In this document: one piece after another, positions 14,706 through 36,344 of the stretch | How positions within the stretch are numbered: position 1 is the stretch's first letter | How the letters are laid out: each line of letters starts with the position of its first letter | Sequence record: MK250021.1 | Strand: one strand, 5' to 3' | DNA: 64,000 bases | Notes under the pieces: generated by a model | Seen by the model: only the letters and a program-made list of their open reading frames with translations | Database searches by the model: none | What the model was told of the DNA's origin: nothing | Position numbers and translations under genes: made by a program

Positions 14706-15039
14706 ATTAAAAAAAATAATGAATGATTCTTTAAAACAAAATAATATCATTGATAAACAAGAGATACCAAATGTAACAATACTTCCAGATTTATCAGATC
14801 CATCAGAATATAAACGATGGTTTAATATGGGTCCTAAAGAAGCATTGGTAAATCTTCAAAAATATGTGGATTTGAACAAGAAAGATAATATTGATTTTAT
14901 TAAAGATTTCAATTATCTTTATACAAATGGTGGTATTTCTGGTTGGAGTAAAATACCATATAAAACATTCTATAACATTATTTATGGTAAACAAAGAGTA
15001 GATTTCAATGGTAATTTAACAGGTGATGAAAATAGTTAA
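14689..15039 (+). CDS. Hypothetical protein
   Basis: 116-aa ORF overlapping both neighbours by 17 nt. Confidence 0.7.
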   Translation: MNTRNELKKIMNDSLKQNNIIDKQEIPNVTILPDLSDPSEYKRWFNMGPKEALVNLQKYVDLNKKDNIDFIKDFNYLYTNGGISGWSKIPYKTFYNIIYGKQRVDFNGNLTGDENS

Positions 15040-15364
15040 ACATATTACTGAAGAACCTGAATATACTGCAGTTAAATTAATAACAACTGATTGTTTAGGA
15101 ATTATCCAATATAGTTTTAATGATAAAGATAATTATGTTTATATTTATAGTTTTTCAGTAGAGAACCATAATAGAGGTAAACATATAGGAACAGAATTAT
15201 TTGAATATTGTTTAAATGAAATAAATTCATTAGATAAGAAAGAGATTCATTTAACAGTTAATAAGAATAATATTCAATTAATTAATTTTTATAAACGATA
15301 TGGATTTATAGTAGTTAATGATAATTATGAAGAATATTATGTTTATATGAAGTTAAATCTCTAA
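15023..15364 (+). CDS. GNAT family acetyltransferase
   Basis: FSVENHNRGKHIGTELF (motif A) and VNKNN...FYKRYGF. Confidence 0.85.
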   Translation: MMKIVKHITEEPEYTAVKLITTDCLGIIQYSFNDKDNYVYIYSFSVENHNRGKHIGTELFEYCLNEINSLDKKEIHLTVNKNNIQLINFYKRYGFIVVNDNYEEYYVYMKLNL

Positions 15365-15560
15365 TTCATTTAATTATTTTTGAAATTAATTTAGATAAAT
15401 AATATAAGAAATATGTTTAAGAATTTGGCGATTGGTTTAAACTATTTTTATAATTTAGAATATAATATATAATTAAAGATATTTATAAATCGTTTATATT
15501 AATAATTTGTATCAATCGCCAATTTTTATACAAATTAAAATATAAACGATTTTTTATTAT

Positions 15561-16691
15561 ATGATAAAGTCTATTAAAATACGAATATATCCTGATACTG
15601 TTTAGAAAGAATTCATTTCTAAATAGTTAGGTTGTTGTCGATTTATATATAATAAATTATTGGATTATAAGAAAACTTAGTATGAACAAAATAAGCAACA
15701 GATTTCTTGGAAAGAGTTAGGTAAATATTTGACTAATCTAAAGAAACAAAAAAAATATTTATTTCTAAATGAAATATATAATGTATGTTTATAGCAATCT
15801 ATAATGGATATGATTAAAGCATATGATAATTTCTTTAAATTACATAAAGGTTATCCTAAATTCAAATCTAAAAAAGATACTAAGCAAAGTTGTAGATTTA
15901 CAAATCAAATATTTAAAAAATCTAATAAAATAAATGGTAATAGGATAACATTAATAAAGCAGTTAAAGAATATATTATTTAAATGCTCAAGAAAAGATGA
16001 GATATATTTAAATCATAATCAAGATAAAATTCATTCTGTTACTCTTATTAAAACATCTACAAACAAATATTATCTATCAATATGTATTGATTATGATATT
16101 GTTTAGAAAAAGGAATTAAATAGTGTAATAGGATTAGATTTAGGAATAAAAGATTTTATTGTTGATTCAAATGGTAATAGATATGAGAATAAACATTTTT
16201 ATAAGAGTCAAGAAAAGAAATTAAAAAAATTATAGAAGTAGTTAAGCAAGAAATAGAAAGGAAGTAATAATAGGAATAAAGTTAGAATTAAAATTGCAAA
16301 AGTTCATGAGAAGATAACAAATCAACGTAATGCGTATTTACATCAAATCACTTCAAAATTAGTTAATGAGAACCAAGTTATCTGTATTGAAGATTTAAAT
16401 GTAAATGGAATGATGTCTAATCATAAACTTGCTAAATCTATTCAAGAGTTATCTTTATTTGAATTTAGACGACAACTTGAATATAAATGTAAATTGTATG
16501 GTAGAGATTTAGTTATAATAGATAGATTCTATCCTTCATCTAAAACATGTCATAATTGCGGATATATTTATAAAAATTTAAAATTAAGTGAACGTGAATG
16601 GATATGTCCACAATGTGGTAAAGTTATAGATAGAGATTATAATGCTTCTTTAAATATTTTAGATGGTGGATTAAAACAAATAAATTTATAA
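15561..16691 (+). CDS. tnpB: RNA-guided endonuclease TnpB (IS200/IS605/IS1341 type), 376 aa, intact under code 15
   Basis: KSIKIRIYP, LGCCRFIYN, YPKFKSKK, GLDLGIKD, IEDLNV, SSKTCHNCG..WICPQCG..DRDYNASLNI; 8 in-frame TAGs at Gln-type positions (L*K*LSKK*KGSNN). Confidence 0.92.
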
Positions 16692-16699
16692 TCAATATA

Positions 16700-16830
16700 A
16701 TATATTAAATAGGGTTGAGTTTTACCGAATTTACGCTTGTGGAGATACCAACTATGGATGACTAAATTGCATTTTATGTAATTATACTAAAAAGTAGTGT
16801 GTCTATGAAACAAGAAACACAGGTTTTTAA
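16700..16830 (+). ncRNA. Putative TnpB omega-RNA scaffold / IS right end
   Basis: GC-richer GGGTTGAG..CCGAATTTACGCTTGTGGAG..CCAACTATGGATGAC..AAAAAGTAGT..TGAAACAAGAA directly after tnpB; ends are approximate. Confidence 0.6.
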
Positions 16831-16853
16831 AAATATAATTTAAAACTAAAACT

Positions 16854-17000
16854 ATGAACATTGAAAAAGCGTTAAGAAATTTAAAGAAAGTAAAAAATGA
16901 AATGGAAATAGAATGTTTATATAAAACTAATGTTGAATATAAAGCACGTCCATGGATGGAACTTATTGGTGATGCTATTTCTTTTCTTGATGGTGATTAA
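16854..17000 (+). CDS. Small hypothetical protein, 48 aa
   Basis: MNIEKALRNLKKVKNEMEIECLY... Confidence 0.55.
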   Translation: MNIEKALRNLKKVKNEMEIECLYKTNVEYKARPWMELIGDAISFLDGD

Positions 17001-17030
17001 AAATAATTAATAAAAATTAATAGAAATTAA

Positions 17031-17354
17031 ATGATAGATCCAAGTTATACATTATATCCGGAAGTTGCAGATGCTACAAATTTATATTTTCATGATGAGC
17101 CTTATGCTTATTGGGTTGAAAATATGAATTATAATTTTTGTAATTGGGTTTTATATAAAGAATATAATAATTATAGTTCTGTATGTAACCCTAATGATTG
17201 CATTGCAGGCATAAGCTATGAGGAAGTAATAGATGAGTTAAAAAATTCATGGTCATATAGAGATCAAGATAGAGAAATGTTAATTCGTACATTTAGACAA
17301 CGTTCATTAGGTGATACTGAATATAATTTTGAAGACTTTATAGATGAAGATTAA
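17031..17354 (+). CDS. Hypothetical protein
   Basis: 107-aa ORF. Confidence 0.75.
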   Translation: MIDPSYTLYPEVADATNLYFHDEPYAYWVENMNYNFCNWVLYKEYNNYSSVCNPNDCIAGISYEEVIDELKNSWSYRDQDREMLIRTFRQRSLGDTEYNFEDFIDED

Positions 17355-17381
17355 TTTAATTACAGTACATCCCTACTGGAA

Positions 17382-17447
17382 ATAAAAATAACGTGAAAAT
17401 TCTTAAGTTTTTCTTAAAAATTCTTAAGTTTTTCACGTTATTTTTAT
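17382..17447. terminator. Bidirectional terminator with an 18-nt direct repeat spanning the loop
   Basis: ATAAAAATAACGTGAAAA/TTTTCACGTTATTTTTAT arms; AAAATTCTTAAGTTTTTC occurs twice. Confidence 0.75.
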
Positions 17448-17462
17448 ATATTTTTATATGTT

Positions 17463-19379
17463 TTATGAATTGTTTACTATTTTCTCAACTTCTTCTCGCT
17501 TCTTATTTGAAACTATCCATCCAGGAGTCTTAACACCATTGATATTCAAGAATTTATTATATTTACAACCTATTTCTTTTAACTGATCTTTAATAGGTGC
17601 AATATCTTTATAATCTCCATATATAGCAATAGCTCTATCTGAATAATCATAAATATGAACATTACTATTATTAACTGGTTTTTCTTCAACAGGTTCTGAA
17701 GCAACTTTCTTTGGTCTTCCCCTACGTTTCTTTATTGCAGAATCAATAGAAGTTGTTTCATCATCTTTTACGACTCTTACTTTTTTCTTTTCTTCTTTTT
17801 GTTTTGCTTTAAGTTCTGCTTTTAATCGTTTAGCTTCTTCCTTTCGCTCTTCAATTATCTTTGCTCTACGTTCTTCTACCGGTTTAACAATAGTATCACG
17901 CATTGTAACAGTTCCACCTTTTTCCATCTTGAATGATGTATGGTCTAACCATTTACAAAATGCAGAATACGTCTTATATTCATCTTTAATACTTAATCTC
18001 TTCATAATAGTATAAGAGATAAATTTATCACCAAGAGATTTAATATATATAGTCCAATTATTTCCAAAATATGTTTGTTTTTCTTTAAGATATTTCAAAC
18101 AATTCTGTTTCATCAATTCATCATCCTCTGCTTTATCTGATGCTTTAAGATTAACCTTATCTATATTTGATTTATTTCTAATTAATTCATTTGAAGATGT
18201 TTCATTTGATGGTTCCACATATTCATGATGTGGTCCTTTCTTTTCATAATAGCAATCTAAAAACCAATCTTTAGATGTTAATATGGTTTTCCATTGTGGC
18301 TTAGTAGGTTTCCATCTTCTACAATTAGCTGCGAATTTATATGGTCCTAATTGAATCCATATACCAGCACCTTTACCAGGAAATCCACCAGCAACAAAAT
18401 CTAATTTAGGTAATATATCCATTGACAAGCCTTCAAATGACATATAAGGTAAAACTCTCCAAGGCCATATTTCGGTTCTAAACCATATTTTATCACATTT
18501 CGGTAAACCAACAAAATTTATTTTCTTACCTATATTATCTAATTCCTGATATGGTTCTTGCTTTGAACGCTCATCTCGTAACTCCATTTGAATATCATAA
18601 TTTCCATCGGGTAATCCTATAAAATTATATGTTTTTGGTAAACCTTGATATGTATAAGTATTATTTCTGAATGTATCATTTACTTTTTTTATAAATGAAT
18701 AATCATTCATATTAAAACATTCTTGTAATCCAATACCATCAGCGGATATAATCTCTACAGAATCATCTATCCAACATCTCAATAAGTCTACTGAAACTTT
18801 TGGTTTCGTGTTAGCATACCATGTATTTGAATTATATACAGTTTCAAATAATTTCTTTTCTTTTATTTTATCACCATCAATACGAAGGTTCTTTGGATAA
18901 ATTCCTTTTAATCCAATACTGTCAAAATTTATATTCTTTAAATCCAATACATTTGATTTAGCTTCATCTGATTTTGTATCACCAAATCTACCTATTTCTA
19001 CATTAAATCTCATCAAAACGTTATTAATGCTATATTCTTCTAATTCATCAATAAATTTTTGTGCGCATTCCAATGTATTAAATGAAACATATGTAAGATA
19101 ATATTTTGGATTGTCTTTTTCACTTGTATTATAATAAAATGCAACTGTATCATTATCAACGTCAGCATATACATGTTTATCATTTTCAACACATCTTGTA
19201 TATAAGCCTCGTCTTGCACTAAATGTTTGATCAGTTAAATATTGTTCAATCCATTTAAGCATATTTTTACTCATATTATTAAGCATGTTAGATGTTTCAT
19301 TATCATCTGTTGTACCTATTACATCATCAAAATCATCATCGAACAAACTTTCTACCAAACGTTTAATTCCTTTATTCAT
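17463..19379 (-). CDS. 638-aa protein with AT-hook (KRRGRPKK) and C-terminal YSDRAIAIYGD..GW domain
   Basis: Uninterrupted ORF with no TAG; charged helical linker, AT-hook and a small C-terminal domain. Confidence 0.8.
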   Translation of the reverse strand: MNKGIKRLVESLFDDDFDDVIGTTDDNETSNMLNNMSKNMLKWIEQYLTDQTFSARRGLYTRCVENDKHVYADVDNDTVAFYYNTSEKDNPKYYLTYVSFNTLECAQKFIDELEEYSINNVLMRFNVEIGRFGDTKSDEAKSNVLDLKNINFDSIGLKGIYPKNLRIDGDKIKEKKLFETVYNSNTWYANTKPKVSVDLLRCWIDDSVEIISADGIGLQECFNMNDYSFIKKVNDTFRNNTYTYQGLPKTYNFIGLPDGNYDIQMELRDERSKQEPYQELDNIGKKINFVGLPKCDKIWFRTEIWPWRVLPYMSFEGLSMDILPKLDFVAGGFPGKGAGIWIQLGPYKFAANCRRWKPTKPQWKTILTSKDWFLDCYYEKKGPHHEYVEPSNETSSNELIRNKSNIDKVNLKASDKAEDDELMKQNCLKYLKEKQTYFGNNWTIYIKSLGDKFISYTIMKRLSIKDEYKTYSAFCKWLDHTSFKMEKGGTVTMRDTIVKPVEERRAKIIEERKEEAKRLKAELKAKQKEEKKKVRVVKDDETTSIDSAIKKRRGRPKKVASEPVEEKPVNNSNVHIYDYSDRAIAIYGDYKDIAPIKDQLKEIGCKYNKFLNINGVKTPGWIVSNKKREEVEKIVNNS

Positions 19380-19441
19380 AATTTAAATTATAATTAAAAA
19401 TTCACATTTTATTATTTATTAAAAAAGGGTAACAATTAGTT

Positions 19442-20626
19442 TTATCTAACTGTACCCTTACCAAATGTTTTATTAATTTCTCGTTTAATATCTGTAATCG
19501 TATTCTTTATATAATCCTTATCATATTGTAAAATGTAATCTTTAAATCTACTTCCATTATACTTATATCCTTTAAGTTCATGAAATAGTTGCAAGACTTC
19601 ATTTAATATATATGTATAATTTTCATCATTATAACATTTCAATACATCATAAATCCTTTGTTTAATATCACTAAACTATTTCTTTAATATATAAAAATCA
19701 CCTTCTGTATTATGAATCATTCTATTAATACCTTTTGTAGTATAACCATTTGATATAAGTAATGCTCTATCAGTTAATGTATTATACTTATTATATGGTG
19801 ATCTGATTTTTAAATTTAAAACTGTATTGAAATTTGTATCTGATTTTTGTCCTAATTTCTTAAATGTTCCATCATTATTAAATTCGCAATCAATAGCTAT
19901 AGGTGCTGGCATTACATATGTTTTGAAATATTCAGCTTCACCTGTTTCTGCATTACAGAAATAAAAGAAAAATACAGTAGTAATATTTCTAAGATTTGTT
20001 TGACATTTATTTTCTTTTACTTCCAACTATCGCATATCATTAAGAATCTAATCAATACCTTTCATTGCATTGTTAACTTTACCTTTAAATGTATTATCAT
20101 CGAAGAAACTACATAAAACAGATTTAACCTCTATATATGTTTCATCTCCATTAGGCTAAGTTAACTTAATATCTGGACATTCATTTCTTCCATTTGGTTC
20201 ATGCTCAATTTTATATCCAATGTTTTCAGGAAATATACAGTGCATTATATGTTCAGAAGCAGAATGACATAAATTCATAAGTAACGAATCTGTATATACA
20301 ACCTTATTATCTTTGGACATAAACTATGTTAATGTTCCTCTGAAAGTTATCTTATTTGAATCTTTATTAGTAACAGTAAAAATAGGATCTTCTAAACCAA
20401 ATGTCATATAATTATCATCTGTATATTCATGAATATCATTATATAACATATAGAACTATCGTATATACTCATCATCTGTAGAGTATTCCAACCACTACTT
20501 AATACTGTCTTCCAAATCATTAGCGACAAAAATACTATCATCCAATGATGATAGAAACTATCGTCTTTCTTCAGGATTATTAATACATTTCAGAATACGC
20601 TACGGACTTTTTGATTTGTTACTCAT
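19442..20626 (-). CDS. PD-(D/E)XK restriction-endonuclease-like protein, 394 aa (code 15)
   Basis: ATG 20626, joins track ORFs 19676-20026 and 19442-19642; HEPNGRNECPDIKLT*PNGDETYIEVKS. Confidence 0.65.
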
Positions 20627-20673
20627 TTATAAATTTTGATTAATTTTATTATGATTATTATAAATCAAATCTT

Positions 20674-21030
20674 TTAAAAAGTTTTATTAAAATTAATCAA
20701 ATTCTCTGTTATATTAATATATGTTTCTCCTTTATGGATTGAATCGTTAAATCCATATTCATCTCTTAATTGTTTACCGAATTTATCTTGTAAATATAAT
20801 TTAACATTCAAATTCAATACATCGTCATTATCATCAGAAGTTAATACATATACTTCATTAAATTTCAATACAATAGGAATCTCTATATGGTCTTCTCCTA
20901 TAACTATATTAAATTTTGTTAACTAATATTTCTTTATATTATTCTTTATTCGTATAACAAAATTATTATTATAAGACTATTCTTTCTATGTATTATTTAG
21001 ACAATTTTTAAATAACGTAATCAAATTCAT
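20674..21030 (-). CDS. Hypothetical protein, 118 aa (code 15)
   Basis: ATG 21030, in frame with track ORF 20674-20868 through TAGs. Confidence 0.65.
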
Positions 21031-21063
21031 TTTTTAACTTAACTATCAATTTATAAAAAATAT

Positions 21064-22110
21064 TTATTTCTAATTAATTAAATAATTAATAATATGTTTA
21101 AAATATAGTTTATCTAATTTCTTAATTAAATATGATAATAGTTCATTATAATCTTTTACTTTTATTTTATACATATTATTAAATATCTTTAAATAATATT
21201 CATTAAACATACTTTTCTACTATTCAGATAAATCTAAACAGAAATTTAATCTCATATATAACCAATAATATTCATTATAAATCTCAGAATATTTACATAA
21301 ATCACTACGTTTATGTAATTCTATTTCATCTTCTATTTTATTAAACTATCCTATTGTATTTTCTATTCTTGCTTGAACTTCAGATTTATTTAGTAAATAT
21401 GCATTACTTATAAGATATTTAAATACATCTCCAACTAATACATGTTTCATCTAAAACTATTTCTGTGGATCTATATTATTATTTAATATTAATTTTTTAT
21501 TATTTGTATTTACTACCGAATCATATCTCTAACTATATAAAATATCTGAATTTAAATCAGCTTCTGATATTTTCGTTATATACATATCATATATATGTTT
21601 TAACTCATGTAATATAACATAATATATGTCAAAATTATTATCATTTAAATCAACACAATTAATATATATTGAAACATTATTAACTTTATCATTTTTTATT
21701 GTAAACGGACACGAATATACATTTATGTTATTTGTATCAATAACATAACTATTATACTTATTTCTTGATATTATACATGAATCATTCTAATTTTCAAATA
21801 TATCAGAAACATATATAGTAATATCATTAATCCATTTTGTACATTTACTTAAATCTATATAATAACGTTTAAAATATAATTCACCATCTAATCTTGTATC
21901 ATAATCTAATCCAGATTTTAAATCTTTTATTATTTCATCCGATACTTCCTTTATAATATTTTCATATTCTTTATTACCAAATTCTATTTTACCATATGAT
22001 TCTCTTAATACATATAAATCATGTAAAGATATATTTTTTATTTTCTATGGTGTAAATCTTTCACTTATTAACCCTAAATATATTTGTTTTGATGATTCTA
22101 TAAAATACAT
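21064..22110 (-). CDS. HExxH zincin-like protein, 348 aa (code 15)
   Basis: Missed by the track; VILHELKHIYD and YLLNKSEVQARIE; TAA at 21064-21066. Confidence 0.7.
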
Positions 22111-22155
22111 AATAATTTAAATAGTTTACTTATTTAAATAATTCACTTATTCTGT

Positions 22156-23511
22156 TCAAAAATATGAACAACATATATATGATTTGTGTGAAGTGAATCT
22201 AGAAAACTATAGATTAAACTAATCTATAGAAAGTCGATATTTAAGTTTCGACTTTTTGAAGAAGTAATATAGTTCAATTAAATCCTTATATGTAGGTTGT
22301 AACTTAAATTCTTCCAACGACTTAAGATACAACTTATTAAACATACTTAAACTAGGTCTCACTATATTCTTTTTAATATCTTTGGTTTTACTTATATATT
22401 GATTATAAAACTCATATCCTCTACGACCTATCTCTATTGACGCTAATACCATATCAGGTAAATTTAATGACCGATATAAGAAATTACCAATAAAACTTGA
22501 ATATTCAGGTTTAACCTTTAATAACTTTATATTGAAGATATTACAACGTTTAGTTAAATTATTAATTAACGTATTCCTACACCATGAATTATTCACCAAC
22601 TTATTATATCGCTTACCTTTATCTAAATCTTTTGATTTAATATTTAAATCTTCAATAGAAATAATCTGACATTTATAATATATTGCTTTATTAATTAAAT
22701 TCTTTACTATCTATATAGTCTCAAAATTCCTTTTATTACTTATATATTTTCTTTCATTAGATTCAGAACTATACCCTTTATTCTTTAAATTAAAATCTTT
22801 ATCATTTAACTTTTTAATAGAATAAATACCAGATTTAACTACATCAAATTCTGATTCTGATTTCCAATTAACAATACTCCATCCTATATAATTAGGATTC
22901 AAATCCAATGAGAGAACTCTATTCTTTATGAATTTAGTTTCATAATTATAAATATCAGTTTCTTCAAATATTATATAAATATAGTCTAAATCTAATTTAT
23001 ACGCAATCTTTATTTCTTTCCTTTCTTGTTTCTAATATAATTTAGATAGTATTTGTTTACGTTTATTTAGTCCTATAAGTTGTAAATTTATTTTAGTAGA
23101 TTTATTAGGTTTAAAAGTAATATTTTCTAAATCTTGTTCTATATGAAATTTCCTATTTGCCTTAATACCTTTATTAACCACTTCACCTATTGAATATATA
23201 GATGATAATCTTTTCTATTTAAACTATTTATTAGATATTTTACTTTTTAATCTATCAAAATAATTTTTCTTTCCACCAAATATTACCTTATCTTTCTTTG
23301 GTATATCATAAAAACTACATTGAATAAACCAACTATCTAATAAATCTACATTATTTAACTATTTAAGTTGCTATTTTATATCTTTCTATAATTTACCTTC
23401 CTATATTCTATTATATACAAAATGCTATACAGAACTATATTGTCTCATATAATCCTGTATAATATCTAATGACTAATCATCTGTTTGATATTTAATCTTC
23501 AATACTTGCAT
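22156..23511 (-). CDS. tnpB: TnpB-related RuvC nuclease lacking the Zn finger, 451 aa (code 15)
   Basis: VIFGGKK, RuvC-I SLDLNPNYIG, RuvC-II ISIEDL, VKPEYSSFIG, RuvC-III PDMVLASIEIGRRG; about 12 TAGs; TGA at 22156-22158. Confidence 0.8.
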
Positions 23512-23689
23512 TATTAATTGTATATAATATTATAACTTTTTATTATTTATCTATTTTATTTTTATAAAATACCTAATTTTATAAAATTTTTATGAAAGTT
23601 ATTTAAATATTATATTCTAAATTATAAGGTTATTCTTTATATGTCATGTCTTATTTAGTCATTTGCTAAATAATGTAATCAAATTCATT

Positions 23690-23726
23690 AAAAATGGGAT
23701 TATTACAAGCCATATGTAATAATCCC
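23690..23726 (-). terminator. Intrinsic terminator
   Basis: GGGATTATTACA-7nt-TGTAATAATCCC with a T tract on the minus strand. Confidence 0.85.
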
Positions 23727-23738
23727 AATATCTTTTAT

Positions 23739-24296
23739 TTAGTCTTCATAATTATTAACCATATAATTAAATACCTAATCAAATGTTGAGTCGATATTCC
23801 AAAAACTTTTTATATCATTTAAGTTTTCATTCGCTAATATCACAGTAGTATCATAAAATTGATTATCATATTCTTCTATATAATCTTTCATTTCATTACT
23901 TAATATACAAACAGTATTATTTGTTTGAAATTCTCTTGACATCTTCAAATCCTTATCATTATATTCTAAATCATAAGGGTATTCTTTATAAATGTCAATG
24001 GTAGGATTTATAGCTATCAAATTACCATCATAAAACGACTATAACCAGAAATACGCAGATGGTCCATCGGTTATTACACATGCGTAATTATCTATATATG
24101 CATATATAGTTTCCGAATCAATTTCCATCTATATATTATCAGGTACATAATTATATTGTTTCTAAATATTATCAAACAATTTAAAGACTATATCATAATT
24201 ATCACCATAACAAAGATTTATCTGTTCTCTCAACATATCATATTTCTTCTTTGTTTTATAATCATGATCCAGAATAATTAAGATTTTTTGTTTCAT
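23739..24296 (-). CDS. Hypothetical protein, 185 aa (code 15)
   Basis: ATG 24296 to TAA 23739-23741; translated through 4 TAGs. Confidence 0.75.
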
Positions 24297-24433
24297 AATT
24301 AAAAACTTCATTTAATTTTAACTATGTTCATTCGTTTATTCAAATTATTATTCATTAATCTTAATTATTGCTAAAATATATCCTATAATATTTATTAAAC
24401 TAAACAATTGTAAAAAATACACTAATATATTAT

Positions 24434-25324
24434 ATGAAAATAATAGATTTAACACAATATAAAAATTACTATTTCATTGGTGATCCACATGGAATAGATA
24501 TAATTTATAACATATTAAATTCATATATAAATGAAAATAATATGTTAGATAATTCTATTTTATTTTTCTGTGGTGACAATGGAATAGGATTTGATACTGC
24601 AGAAGAAACACATAAGAAATTAGAGTTATGTAATGAATTTGCGATAAAGCATAATCTCCATTTAATATTAGTTCGTGGTAATCATGATAATCCATACTTT
24701 TATAATGAATCAAATATATTAAATAAAAGTAATATTACATTAGTAGAAGATTATACTATAGTGAAAACATATGATAACAATGTATTATGTATAGGTGGTT
24801 CAATATCTGTTGACAGAACAAATAGGGCATTAAATAAAACATGGTGGAATAAAGAAGAAATAATTCCTATCAATGATGAAATAGAAAATGAATTAAGTAA
24901 TTTAAATTTCAATATTGATATTGTTTGTTCACATAATTGTCCGACTTATGAAAAACCTAAGAATATAGACAAATACAATCAAGGAGAAATAGTCGATAAT
25001 TGGTCCGTATGGGACTCAAAACTTTTAGATGATAACTTTATAGACCGTAGTAAAATGAACGCGATACACGAGGTTTTACAAGCTAAATTGAAGAATAATC
25101 TAAAGTATTGGATATACGGTCACTATCATAATCATTATGAATCTATAAGAACACATCCGAAATTCATTTGTCTTGATATGTATTATAAAAATATTGTTAT
25201 AGTAAAAAAAGTAACAACAAAAACATATAAAACAAATGGTTATTTTTATAAAGCAGGTCCTGATATTTTAGATATACATGATGAATCTAAATTCAGTAAT
25301 ATAAAATTTATAGAAACAAAATAA
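24434..25324 (+). CDS. Calcineurin-like metallophosphoesterase
   Basis: GDPHG, CGDNG, VRGNHD, SHNCP, YGHYH. Confidence 0.9.
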   Translation: MKIIDLTQYKNYYFIGDPHGIDIIYNILNSYINENNMLDNSILFFCGDNGIGFDTAEETHKKLELCNEFAIKHNLHLILVRGNHDNPYFYNESNILNKSNITLVEDYTIVKTYDNNVLCIGGSISVDRTNRALNKTWWNKEEIIPINDEIENELSNLNFNIDIVCSHNCPTYEKPKNIDKYNQGEIVDNWSVWDSKLLDDNFIDRSKMNAIHEVLQAKLKNNLKYWIYGHYHNHYESIRTHPKFICLDMYYKNIVIVKKVTTKTYKTNGYFYKAGPDILDIHDESKFSNIKFIETK

Positions 25325-36126: not shown

Positions 36127-36198
36127 GCATGATTAGCTAAGTGGTACAGCAGGAAACTTTAAACTTCCAGATCACGGGTTCGATCCCTGTATCATGCA
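36127..36198 (+). tRNA. tRNA with UUA anticodon (ochre suppressor-type); CCA not encoded
   Basis: Acceptor GCATGAT/ATCATGC + A73, D arm GCT/AGC with GG, anticodon arm GGAAA-CT TTA AA-CTTCC, T arm ACGGG-TTCGATC-CCTGT. Confidence 0.88.
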
Positions 36199-36344
36199 CA
36201 TCTAAATTTAAAATAAAAGTATAAAACTATGGAACTTCAACATTGGTAAGTTACATGTGATCGTGGACCTTAATTTTTGTATATTTTAATTTTATATATT
36301 AATCATAAAACTATTATTAAACAAAATTAAAACTATACAAAATT

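Follow-up and report, generated by a model that had tools for sequence, protein, structure and literature searches.

Organization of the locus

The window is a 64,000-nt stretch of sequence record MK250021.1, the Prevotella megaphage Lak-B2, and the 5-kb stretch around the repeat under study is 99–99.7% identical to other Lak-B genomes. The window has a GC content of ~24% and its long frames open only if TAG is a sense codon, a recoding that is a known trait of Lak megaphages; all genes described here were read with TAG as glutamine. A suppressor tRNA with the anticodon TTA was detected by ARAGORN at positions 36127–36199 on the plus strand. This anticodon decodes TAA and, through wobble, perhaps TAG; it is TAG that is recoded in this genome, in which TAA seems to be the main stop. 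The genes and signals surrounding the repeat are the following:

20674–21030, minus strand: gene for a 118-aa protein; its true 5′ end (20968–21031) is the source-like sequence of a pseudo-copy in the tnpB2 leader
21064–22110, minus strand: ORF348, with a HELKH (HExxH-like) motif; found in Lak-B only and missing at this site in Lak-A1, A2 and C1
22144–23686, minus strand: inserted segment of 1543 bp, present in Lak-B1, B2, B3 and B5–B9 and absent from Lak-B4
22156–23511, minus strand: tnpB2, 451 aa with 12 in-frame TAG codons; predicted divergent TnpB without a zinc finger
23695–23727, minus strand: intrinsic terminator of the 190-aa gene, a 13-bp stem followed by a T-run
23739–24311, minus strand: gene for a 190-aa hypothetical protein that is conserved across Lak-A, B and C

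The 190-aa frame also is open only when TAG is translated as glutamine, and measures 190 aa from its first ATG; the length of 185 aa assigned to it in the earlier note is that counted from the sixth codon. Searches of Pfam and PHROGs produced no family match for the 190-aa, 118-aa, 348-aa and 394-aa proteins, and a literature search found no paper that connects Lak phages with TnpB.

A 33-nt repeat shared by the tnpB2 leader and the 190-aa gene

The two copies of the repeat are positioned as follows:

23609–23641, minus strand: intergenic copy of the 33-mer, within the inserted segment and 98–130 nt upstream of the tnpB2 ATG
23958–23997, minus strand: native copy in its extended span; the 33-mer itself (23958–23990) lies in the 190-aa CDS and encodes YKEYPYDLEYN

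The repeat had been described as a 31/33 match on the minus strand in which TGACA precedes both copies, and each of these points was borne out: the copies differ at 2 of 33 positions and the pentamer is present before both. Matches with ≤3 mismatches numbered two in the window and zero in 100 dinucleotide-preserving shuffles, none of which yielded such a pair, and chance was ruled out as the source of the repeat. When a 2-nt indel was admitted, the similarity spanned ~40 nt (23646–23609 against 23997–23958) at 90% identity (~36/40 positions). The orthologues of the 190-aa gene in Lak-A1, A2 and C1 carry the CDS sequence, with ~85% identity to the leader copy, and the native CDS sequence therefore is ancestral. 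The leader copy includes a 3-nt insertion that is typical of the Lak-B version of the 190-aa gene. A target-site duplication was not found, as the 33-mer copies do not flank both ends of the element but lie 349 nt apart on one side of it, one being inside the element and the other in the upstream gene.

The leader of tnpB2 is a mosaic

Positions in the leader are given as q coordinates, in which q1 is 23689 and counting proceeds along the minus strand. The leader contains the following features in addition to the 33-mer:

23621–23689, minus strand: pseudo-copy that matches the opening 64 nt of the 118-aa gene at 80% identity, with a 5-nt indel; it opens the inserted segment and contains the hairpin
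23651–23673, minus strand: leader hairpin, 8 bp and A/U-rich, with arms TTATTTAG and CTAAATAA around a 7-nt loop; part of the copied gene start
23599–23627, minus strand: 29-mer common to tnpB1-type leaders (27/29), overlapping the 33-mer by its final 19 nt

The first ~80 nt of the inserted segment proved to be a patchwork of the start of the 118-aa gene, the copy from the 190-aa CDS and the element's own leader. In a three-way alignment, q1–69 matched the start of the 118-aa gene (21031–20968) with 80% identity, q44–81 matched the 190-aa CDS (23997–23958) with 90% identity, and q63–91 matched the leader of tnpB1 (15448–15476) with 93% identity. Each similarity ends abruptly and the changeovers sit where two sources resemble each other: 17 of 21 positions are shared by the two native genes at one joint, and 18 of 19 by the CDS and the element's own leader at the other. 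The best 44 nt of the pseudo-copy are 86% identical to the 118-aa gene, the true start of which is situated 2.6 kb downstream of its leader copy, and the copied frame reaches a stop after nine codons. The hairpin that the earlier note had pointed out was found at 23673–23651, and the true start of the 118-aa gene possesses a 7-bp version of it. The note had not recorded that the hairpin lies inside this second repeat, that the leader is within a segment that varies in its presence among Lak-B genomes, or that tnpB2 has no Pfam TnpB match. Paralogy of the 190-aa and 118-aa proteins was discarded as the origin of the similarity, as BLASTP found nothing.

Among the copies compared, the mosaic portion is private to the Lak-B locus. 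Homology with other copies of the tnpB2 family, in Lak-A1, A2 and C1 and in IMG/VR contigs, begins only at ~q65 to q128, and the first ~62–75 nt of the leader were found in no other family copy; for one copy in Lak-C1 (47k), comparison with an empty site in Lak-A1 placed the start at the position that corresponds to q78. The exact hairpin sequence was recovered in IMG/VR only from Lak-B contigs at the same locus, and a search of metagenome contigs with a degenerate gene-start pattern gave the same outcome. Neither IMG/VR nor the metagenome scan provided a donor or intermediate allele, the only hits being Lak-B genomes with an identical arrangement, and the leader is identical in all Lak-B alleles that carry the element. 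Acquisition of local patches as a general habit of tnpB2 copies was rejected following a scan of 19 copies, in which patches were present only in the copy of the window. A 72-nt local repeat next to another copy (L060) is a duplicated terminator/intergenic module that lies upstream of the element.

tnpB2 encodes a predicted divergent TnpB of an IS607-like family

The 451-aa product of tnpB2 (P0001) matched no entry in PHROGs or in Pfam, even at an E-value of 10, and a sequence search against PDB chains returned nothing. Comparison with NCBIfam gave sub-threshold matches only, to TIGR01766 (TnpB-related domain; 20.8 bits, below the cut-off of 32) and to Cas12b. A structural model was built from 10 relatives; it is of moderate quality, with a mean pLDDT of 61 and a poor C-terminal stretch of 115 residues. 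In a Foldseek search of the PDB with this model, Cas12k, Cas12f, ISDra2 TnpB and ISFba1 TnpB were ranked at the top with E-values of 5e-8 to 6e-5 and a probability of 1.0, at low TM-scores of about 0.25. Residues D203 (LDLNPNY), E287 (IEDL) and D353 (LPDMVLAS), which were assigned to RuvC motifs by motif resemblance, are invariant in the 10 relatives (50–89% identity), and no conserved CxxC pairs occur among P0001 and these relatives. With a modeled TnpB/Cas12f-like fold and a D-E-D triad, and with no match to the Pfam OrfB_IS605 and Cas12f1-like TNB models, the protein is a divergent TnpB, judged by the modeled structure. Similarity to TnpB1 was restricted in BLASTP to 35 residues, about one RuvC motif, with an E-value of 0.001.

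Relatives of tnpB2 occur in one to five copies each in Lak-A1, A2 and C1 and in Lak contigs of IMG/VR. In three copies (L058, L010 and L013), a gene for a TnpA protein with a Resolvase domain is located directly upstream of the tnpB homolog; the protein in L058 (P0007) matches Pfam Resolvase with an E-value of 6e-24 and has homologs in L010 and L013. As the full copies adjoin a serine-recombinase TnpA, the family is IS607-like. Between the window and the full copy in L058, similarity sets in at q99, a position within the final 22 nt of tnpA; the copy in the window therefore is a tnpA-less derivative, which, unlike a standard IS607 element, also is devoid of its true left end. Lak-B2 contains this single tnpB2 copy and no tnpA anywhere, Lak-B4 contains neither, and none of Lak-B1, B2 and B4 encodes a TnpA. 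Further departures from known IS607 elements are the use of TAG as a sense codon and a TnpB that has no zinc finger and falls outside the Pfam models.

Filled and empty alleles

Lak-B4 lacks exactly 22144–23686, give or take the 3-nt AAT that is shared at both junctions. The flanks of the two genomes are identical for >1.6 kb on one side and differ by one SNP in ~700 bp on the other. The segment begins directly after the T-run of the 190-aa terminator and ends 34 nt upstream of ORF348, and its left junction is crossed without mismatch by a Logan contig from run X1, which may be the source sample of the genome. In Lak-A1, A2 and C1, a larger interval (21053–23735) is missing and the 118-aa gene directly follows the 190-aa terminator. 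Pig-gut contigs attained a depth of 200–480 over tnpB2 and of 6–9 over 23648–23774, and the multi-copy signal in these metagenomes stops within 23521–23647.

IS607 elements insert without duplicating the target site, and their recombination takes place where short motifs match (PMC6188088, PMC10711439). Neither target-site duplications nor terminal inverted repeats were seen here and a short motif is common to the junctions; the shared AAT is compatible with IS607-type recombination. The motif is A/T-rich, in contrast to the GG reported for IS607 (PMC10711439). There is no duplication at the Lak-B2/Lak-B4 junction, yet a 2-nt deletion and a SNP lie beside it, and at two other sites filled and empty alleles differ by the replacement of 25–34 nt, which also deviates from the IS607 pattern.

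The deletion and SNP are within 6 nt of the junction in the empty site of Lak-B4 (L001 near 5742), compared with 22137–22140 of the window, and fall at the start of the target predicted for TnpB2 (see below); they could reflect escape or a repair scar. The two further filled/empty pairs are L005 (Lak-C1, ~47.7–49.2 kb) with L044 (Lak-A1), and L074 with L080 (Lak-B4, ~517.3 kb). Their empty alleles have 25 nt and ~34 nt, respectively, that are missing from the filled alleles, which denotes replacement rather than clean insertion. Three tnpB2 copies (that of the window next to the terminator at 23695–23727, L005, and L060 at 2310–2350) are positioned directly downstream of the T-run of an intrinsic terminator, which may be a preferred or merely a tolerated insertion site.

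The putative guide RNA is located at the 3′ end of tnpB2

The earlier note had raised the possibility that the leader hairpin and the 33-mer form a repeat-spacer-like single guide. The RNA features at the opposite end of the element are the following:

22207–22333, minus strand: covarying helices that overlap the tnpB2 3′ end, read as an omegaRNA/reRNA scaffold
22121–22140, minus strand: right flank of the element, into which the 3′ RNA is predicted to read; expected guide of the copy in the window

When 16 copies were aligned over the tnpB2 3′ end, RNAalifold predicted 40 pairs, 15 of which showed compensatory changes, and nucleotide conservation exceeded coding needs. The conserved sequence, with one more small palindrome, continues to about 22165. 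In studied TnpB systems, IS607 included, the reRNA/omegaRNA is at the right (3′) end (PMC10711439), and a structured RNA that overlaps the 3′ end of tnpB is a further likeness of the present family to IS607. Because the scaffold sits at the tnpB2 3′ end, the predicted guide is the right flank, 22140–22121, which closely resembles no other part of the window and is unrelated to the 33-mer.

A self-regulatory guide in the leader, by which TnpB2 would be brought to tnpB1 or to the matching site in the 190-aa gene, is highly improbable. The order of a hairpin followed by sequence that matches another site formally resembles a type V crRNA, and the 31/33 match is near-perfect. TnpB relatives that act as RNA-guided repressors, termed TldR, also exist. 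The resemblance to either system ends there, as the leader has no repeat family and no conservation and is misplaced, at the 5′ rather than the 3′ end of the gene, and as the nuclease triad of tnpB2 is intact, unlike that of TldR-type repressors. The hairpin was copied from coding sequence, and the fold of the leader (-17.7 kcal/mol) is no better than that of shuffles (mean -16.9 kcal/mol; z = -0.26). The indels, and the 4 nt that separate the hairpin repeat from the 33-mer, are more suggestive of decay than of a processed unit. If the leader encoded a guide, the hairpin might be conserved while the adjoining segment varied, as the earlier note proposed to check, but neither was present in any family copy examined in other genomes, and Lak-B2 itself has one copy. 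No Rfam family was detected anywhere in 15000–24500. A leader-encoded guide thus is already contradicted by the architecture of the element.

The sequence shared with the tnpB1 leader

Part of the 33-mer recurs upstream of tnpB1, the gene of a distinct, IS200/IS605-type element:

15422–15525, plus strand: left-end hairpin of tnpB1 with covarying stems; the 21/29-mer (15448–15476) is in the loop, 85 nt upstream of tnpB1
15561–16691, plus strand: tnpB1, which matches the Pfam OrfB_IS605, Cas12f1-like TNB and HTH models

The 21-mer that had been noted as common to tnpB1 is present, but its true extent is larger, 27 of 29 positions being shared between 15448–15476 and 23627–23599. In its protein models and left-end hairpin, tnpB1 is akin to the IS200/IS605 type, and it also has a conserved 3′ RNA region; the tnpB2 leader shares the 29-mer with it, whereas the tnpB2 family is linked to a serine recombinase. 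In the tnpB1 copies L040, L042 and L043, the hairpin stems covary between Lak clades (GGCGATTG, GGCCGGTTAA and GACGGGTTGA with matching partners), and ~40 nt of the loop, including the 21-mer, are nearly unchanged.

The shared 19–29-mer may be a promoter or a binding site. Accordingly, it is conceivable, albeit unlikely, that the 3′ half of the 33-mer and the 29-mer constitute a promoter or operator of phage IS elements, which the tnpB2 element gained or retained and which drives tnpB2 following the loss of tnpA, and that the resemblance to the CDS is an accidental homology that permitted recombination. All tnpB1 copies of Lak-A1, A2, C1 and B4 are preceded by the 21-mer, with 0–2 changes, between hairpin stems that covary, and the spacing of the motif from the ATG is similar in tnpB1 (85 nt) and tnpB2 (88 nt). 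In addition, a related motif is upstream of tnpA in the full 44k copy of Lak-A1 and a partial one is in the 254k leader of Lak-C1. Against these points, the 47k tnpB2 copy of Lak-C1, which retains only 82 nt upstream, has no such motif, and the first 14 nt of the 33-mer and the copied start of the 118-aa gene are left unexplained.

The proposal of a duplicated promoter in sigma-70 form fared less well. The CDS copy does possess the TTGACA-17-TATGAT layout that had been reported, with a score of 11/12, and the intergenic copy reads ATGACA-15-TATAAT, in which the spacing is off. However, the primary sigma factors of Prevotella and other Bacteroidota use a promoter type other than sigma-70 hexamers, and sigma-70-like sites, the consensus of which differs from that of the Prevotella host, are not clearly enriched in the region (13 compared with 8.6 ± 2.7 in shuffles). 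A 13-mer, TAATTTAGA and TTTAGATAAATAATA were considered as general phage promoter motifs and were rejected, being enriched no more than about twofold and not generally upstream of genes; the absence of such a general motif also weighs against a promoter module in the tnpB2 leader. With ≤1 mismatch, the 13-mer had 7 matches where 3.5 were expected, and as many were found in 7 of 100 shuffles; TAATTTAGA had 11 matches against 5.4.

Origin of the mosaic

Insertion scar, duplicated promoter and self-targeting guide were the options put forward for the repeat in the earlier note, and the scar came closest: the copy falls in the opening 80 nt of an element of 1543 bp, missing from a sister phage, in a patchwork of neighboring sequences. 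We consider it probable, with reservations, that recombination left the 33-mer repeat as a scar at the 5′ junction of a transposase-less IS607-type tnpB element. The parent would have been an IS607-family insertion sequence in which a serine-recombinase tnpA preceded the divergent tnpB, and which lost tnpA and the true left end. The lost 5′ part may have been replaced by, or fused to, ~62–75 nt in two patches, the first being the start of the 118-aa gene, which would have supplied the hairpin, and the second the copy from the 190-aa CDS. The patches could have been joined inside short homologies by illegitimate, microhomology-guided recombination or by template switching. The difference between Lak-B2 and Lak-B4 then would have arisen at a later time, when the 1543-bp unit was gained or lost cleanly and as a whole. 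Divergence of the patches from their local sources amounts to 10–20%, whereas Lak-B genomes differ by <1%; the mosaic thus is either old or was formed in a diverged relative. We infer the enzymology from the arrangement of the patches, and their great age or diverged-relative origin from their divergence. At junctions of illegitimate recombination or break repair, filler DNA made by microhomology-mediated template switching is known to contain short patches from nearby, joined in microhomologies. The present patches resemble these in that they match sequences within a few kb and are joined at the 17/21 and 18/19 homologies, but differ in their divergence, which indicates that the event was not recent in the Lak-B2 genome.

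Two related scenarios would account for the patches differently. In one, which we view as rather unlikely, they were formerly flanking DNA beside sequences like the 190-aa and 118-aa genes: a serine recombinase acting in trans would have made its cut farther upstream, in a pseudo left end, rendering the flank mobile with the element, and the enlarged unit later would have entered the present site. That the unit absent from Lak-B4 includes the patches and has AAT at both junctions fits IS607 crossover at short motifs (PMC10711439, PMC6188088), and divergence of 10–20% in the patches, despite identical flanks in Lak-B2 and Lak-B4, fits an origin in a diverged relative. Nevertheless, the two genes would already have had to form a chimera at the earlier site, no TnpA is encoded in any of Lak-B1, B2 and B4, searches of IMG/VR and metagenome contigs yielded no donor allele, and the empty site of Lak-B4 is imperfect, with the 2-nt deletion and SNP beside the junction. 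In the other scenario, to which we assign a comparably low probability, the patchwork is a footprint of TnpB elements settling, in which a break that was made by TnpB or was associated with replication was repaired by microhomology-guided copying from nearby genes. A conflict between the guide and the vacant site would fit both the Lak-B4 deletion and the two pairs in which 25–34 nt are replaced, and the 2-nt deletion, which falls within the opening 6 nt of the predicted target, might be a mutation by which the site escapes and stays empty. If the footprint reading is true, RNA-guided nucleases reshape the genomes of Lak phages.

On the favored interpretation of a recombination scar, the repeat would be an ordinary by-product of mobile-element turnover that says nothing about regulation, and the tempting lead of a self-targeting guide is removed. 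The surrounding TnpB family is more useful. Lak megaphages harbor two unrelated TnpB lineages, one of which is zinc-finger-less, invisible to Pfam and tied to an IS607-type serine recombinase. This lineage is TAG-recoded, multi-copy in Lak-A, Lak-C and pig-gut relatives, and polymorphic among near-identical Lak-B genomes, and thereby adds a compact nuclease family overlooked by standard annotation. Lak-B2 and Lak-B4 furthermore provide a natural filled/empty pair for TnpB homing in phage.

Additional observations on tnpB2 relatives

In pig-gut runs X2, X10 and X20, contigs related to tnpB2 (22124–23647 of the window) had 5–10 times the depth of the flanks, with a peak over the 3′ RNA region at 22251–22377. 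One pig contig joins 20735 to 23755, which is the arrangement of the Lak-A/C type. Contigs of the tnpB2 family also were present in an RNA library in which the flanks were absent; as the element is multi-copy, this is no proof of transcription.

In the contig IMGVR_UViG_3300013901_000216 (L058), flanking sequence from the Lak-B "517 kb" locus, together with a complete left end and tnpA, is joined to the "332 kb" block of tnpB2, ORF348 and the 118-aa gene, and the tnpB2 of this contig lacks 5 nt following codon 4. Either two element copies truly recombined to give the contig, or it is a chimera of the assembly. Finally, a short frame in Lak-B2 (~123.0 kb, L093) and Lak-B4 (L092) displays 40% identity to the first 88 residues of TnpB2 and may be an old remnant.
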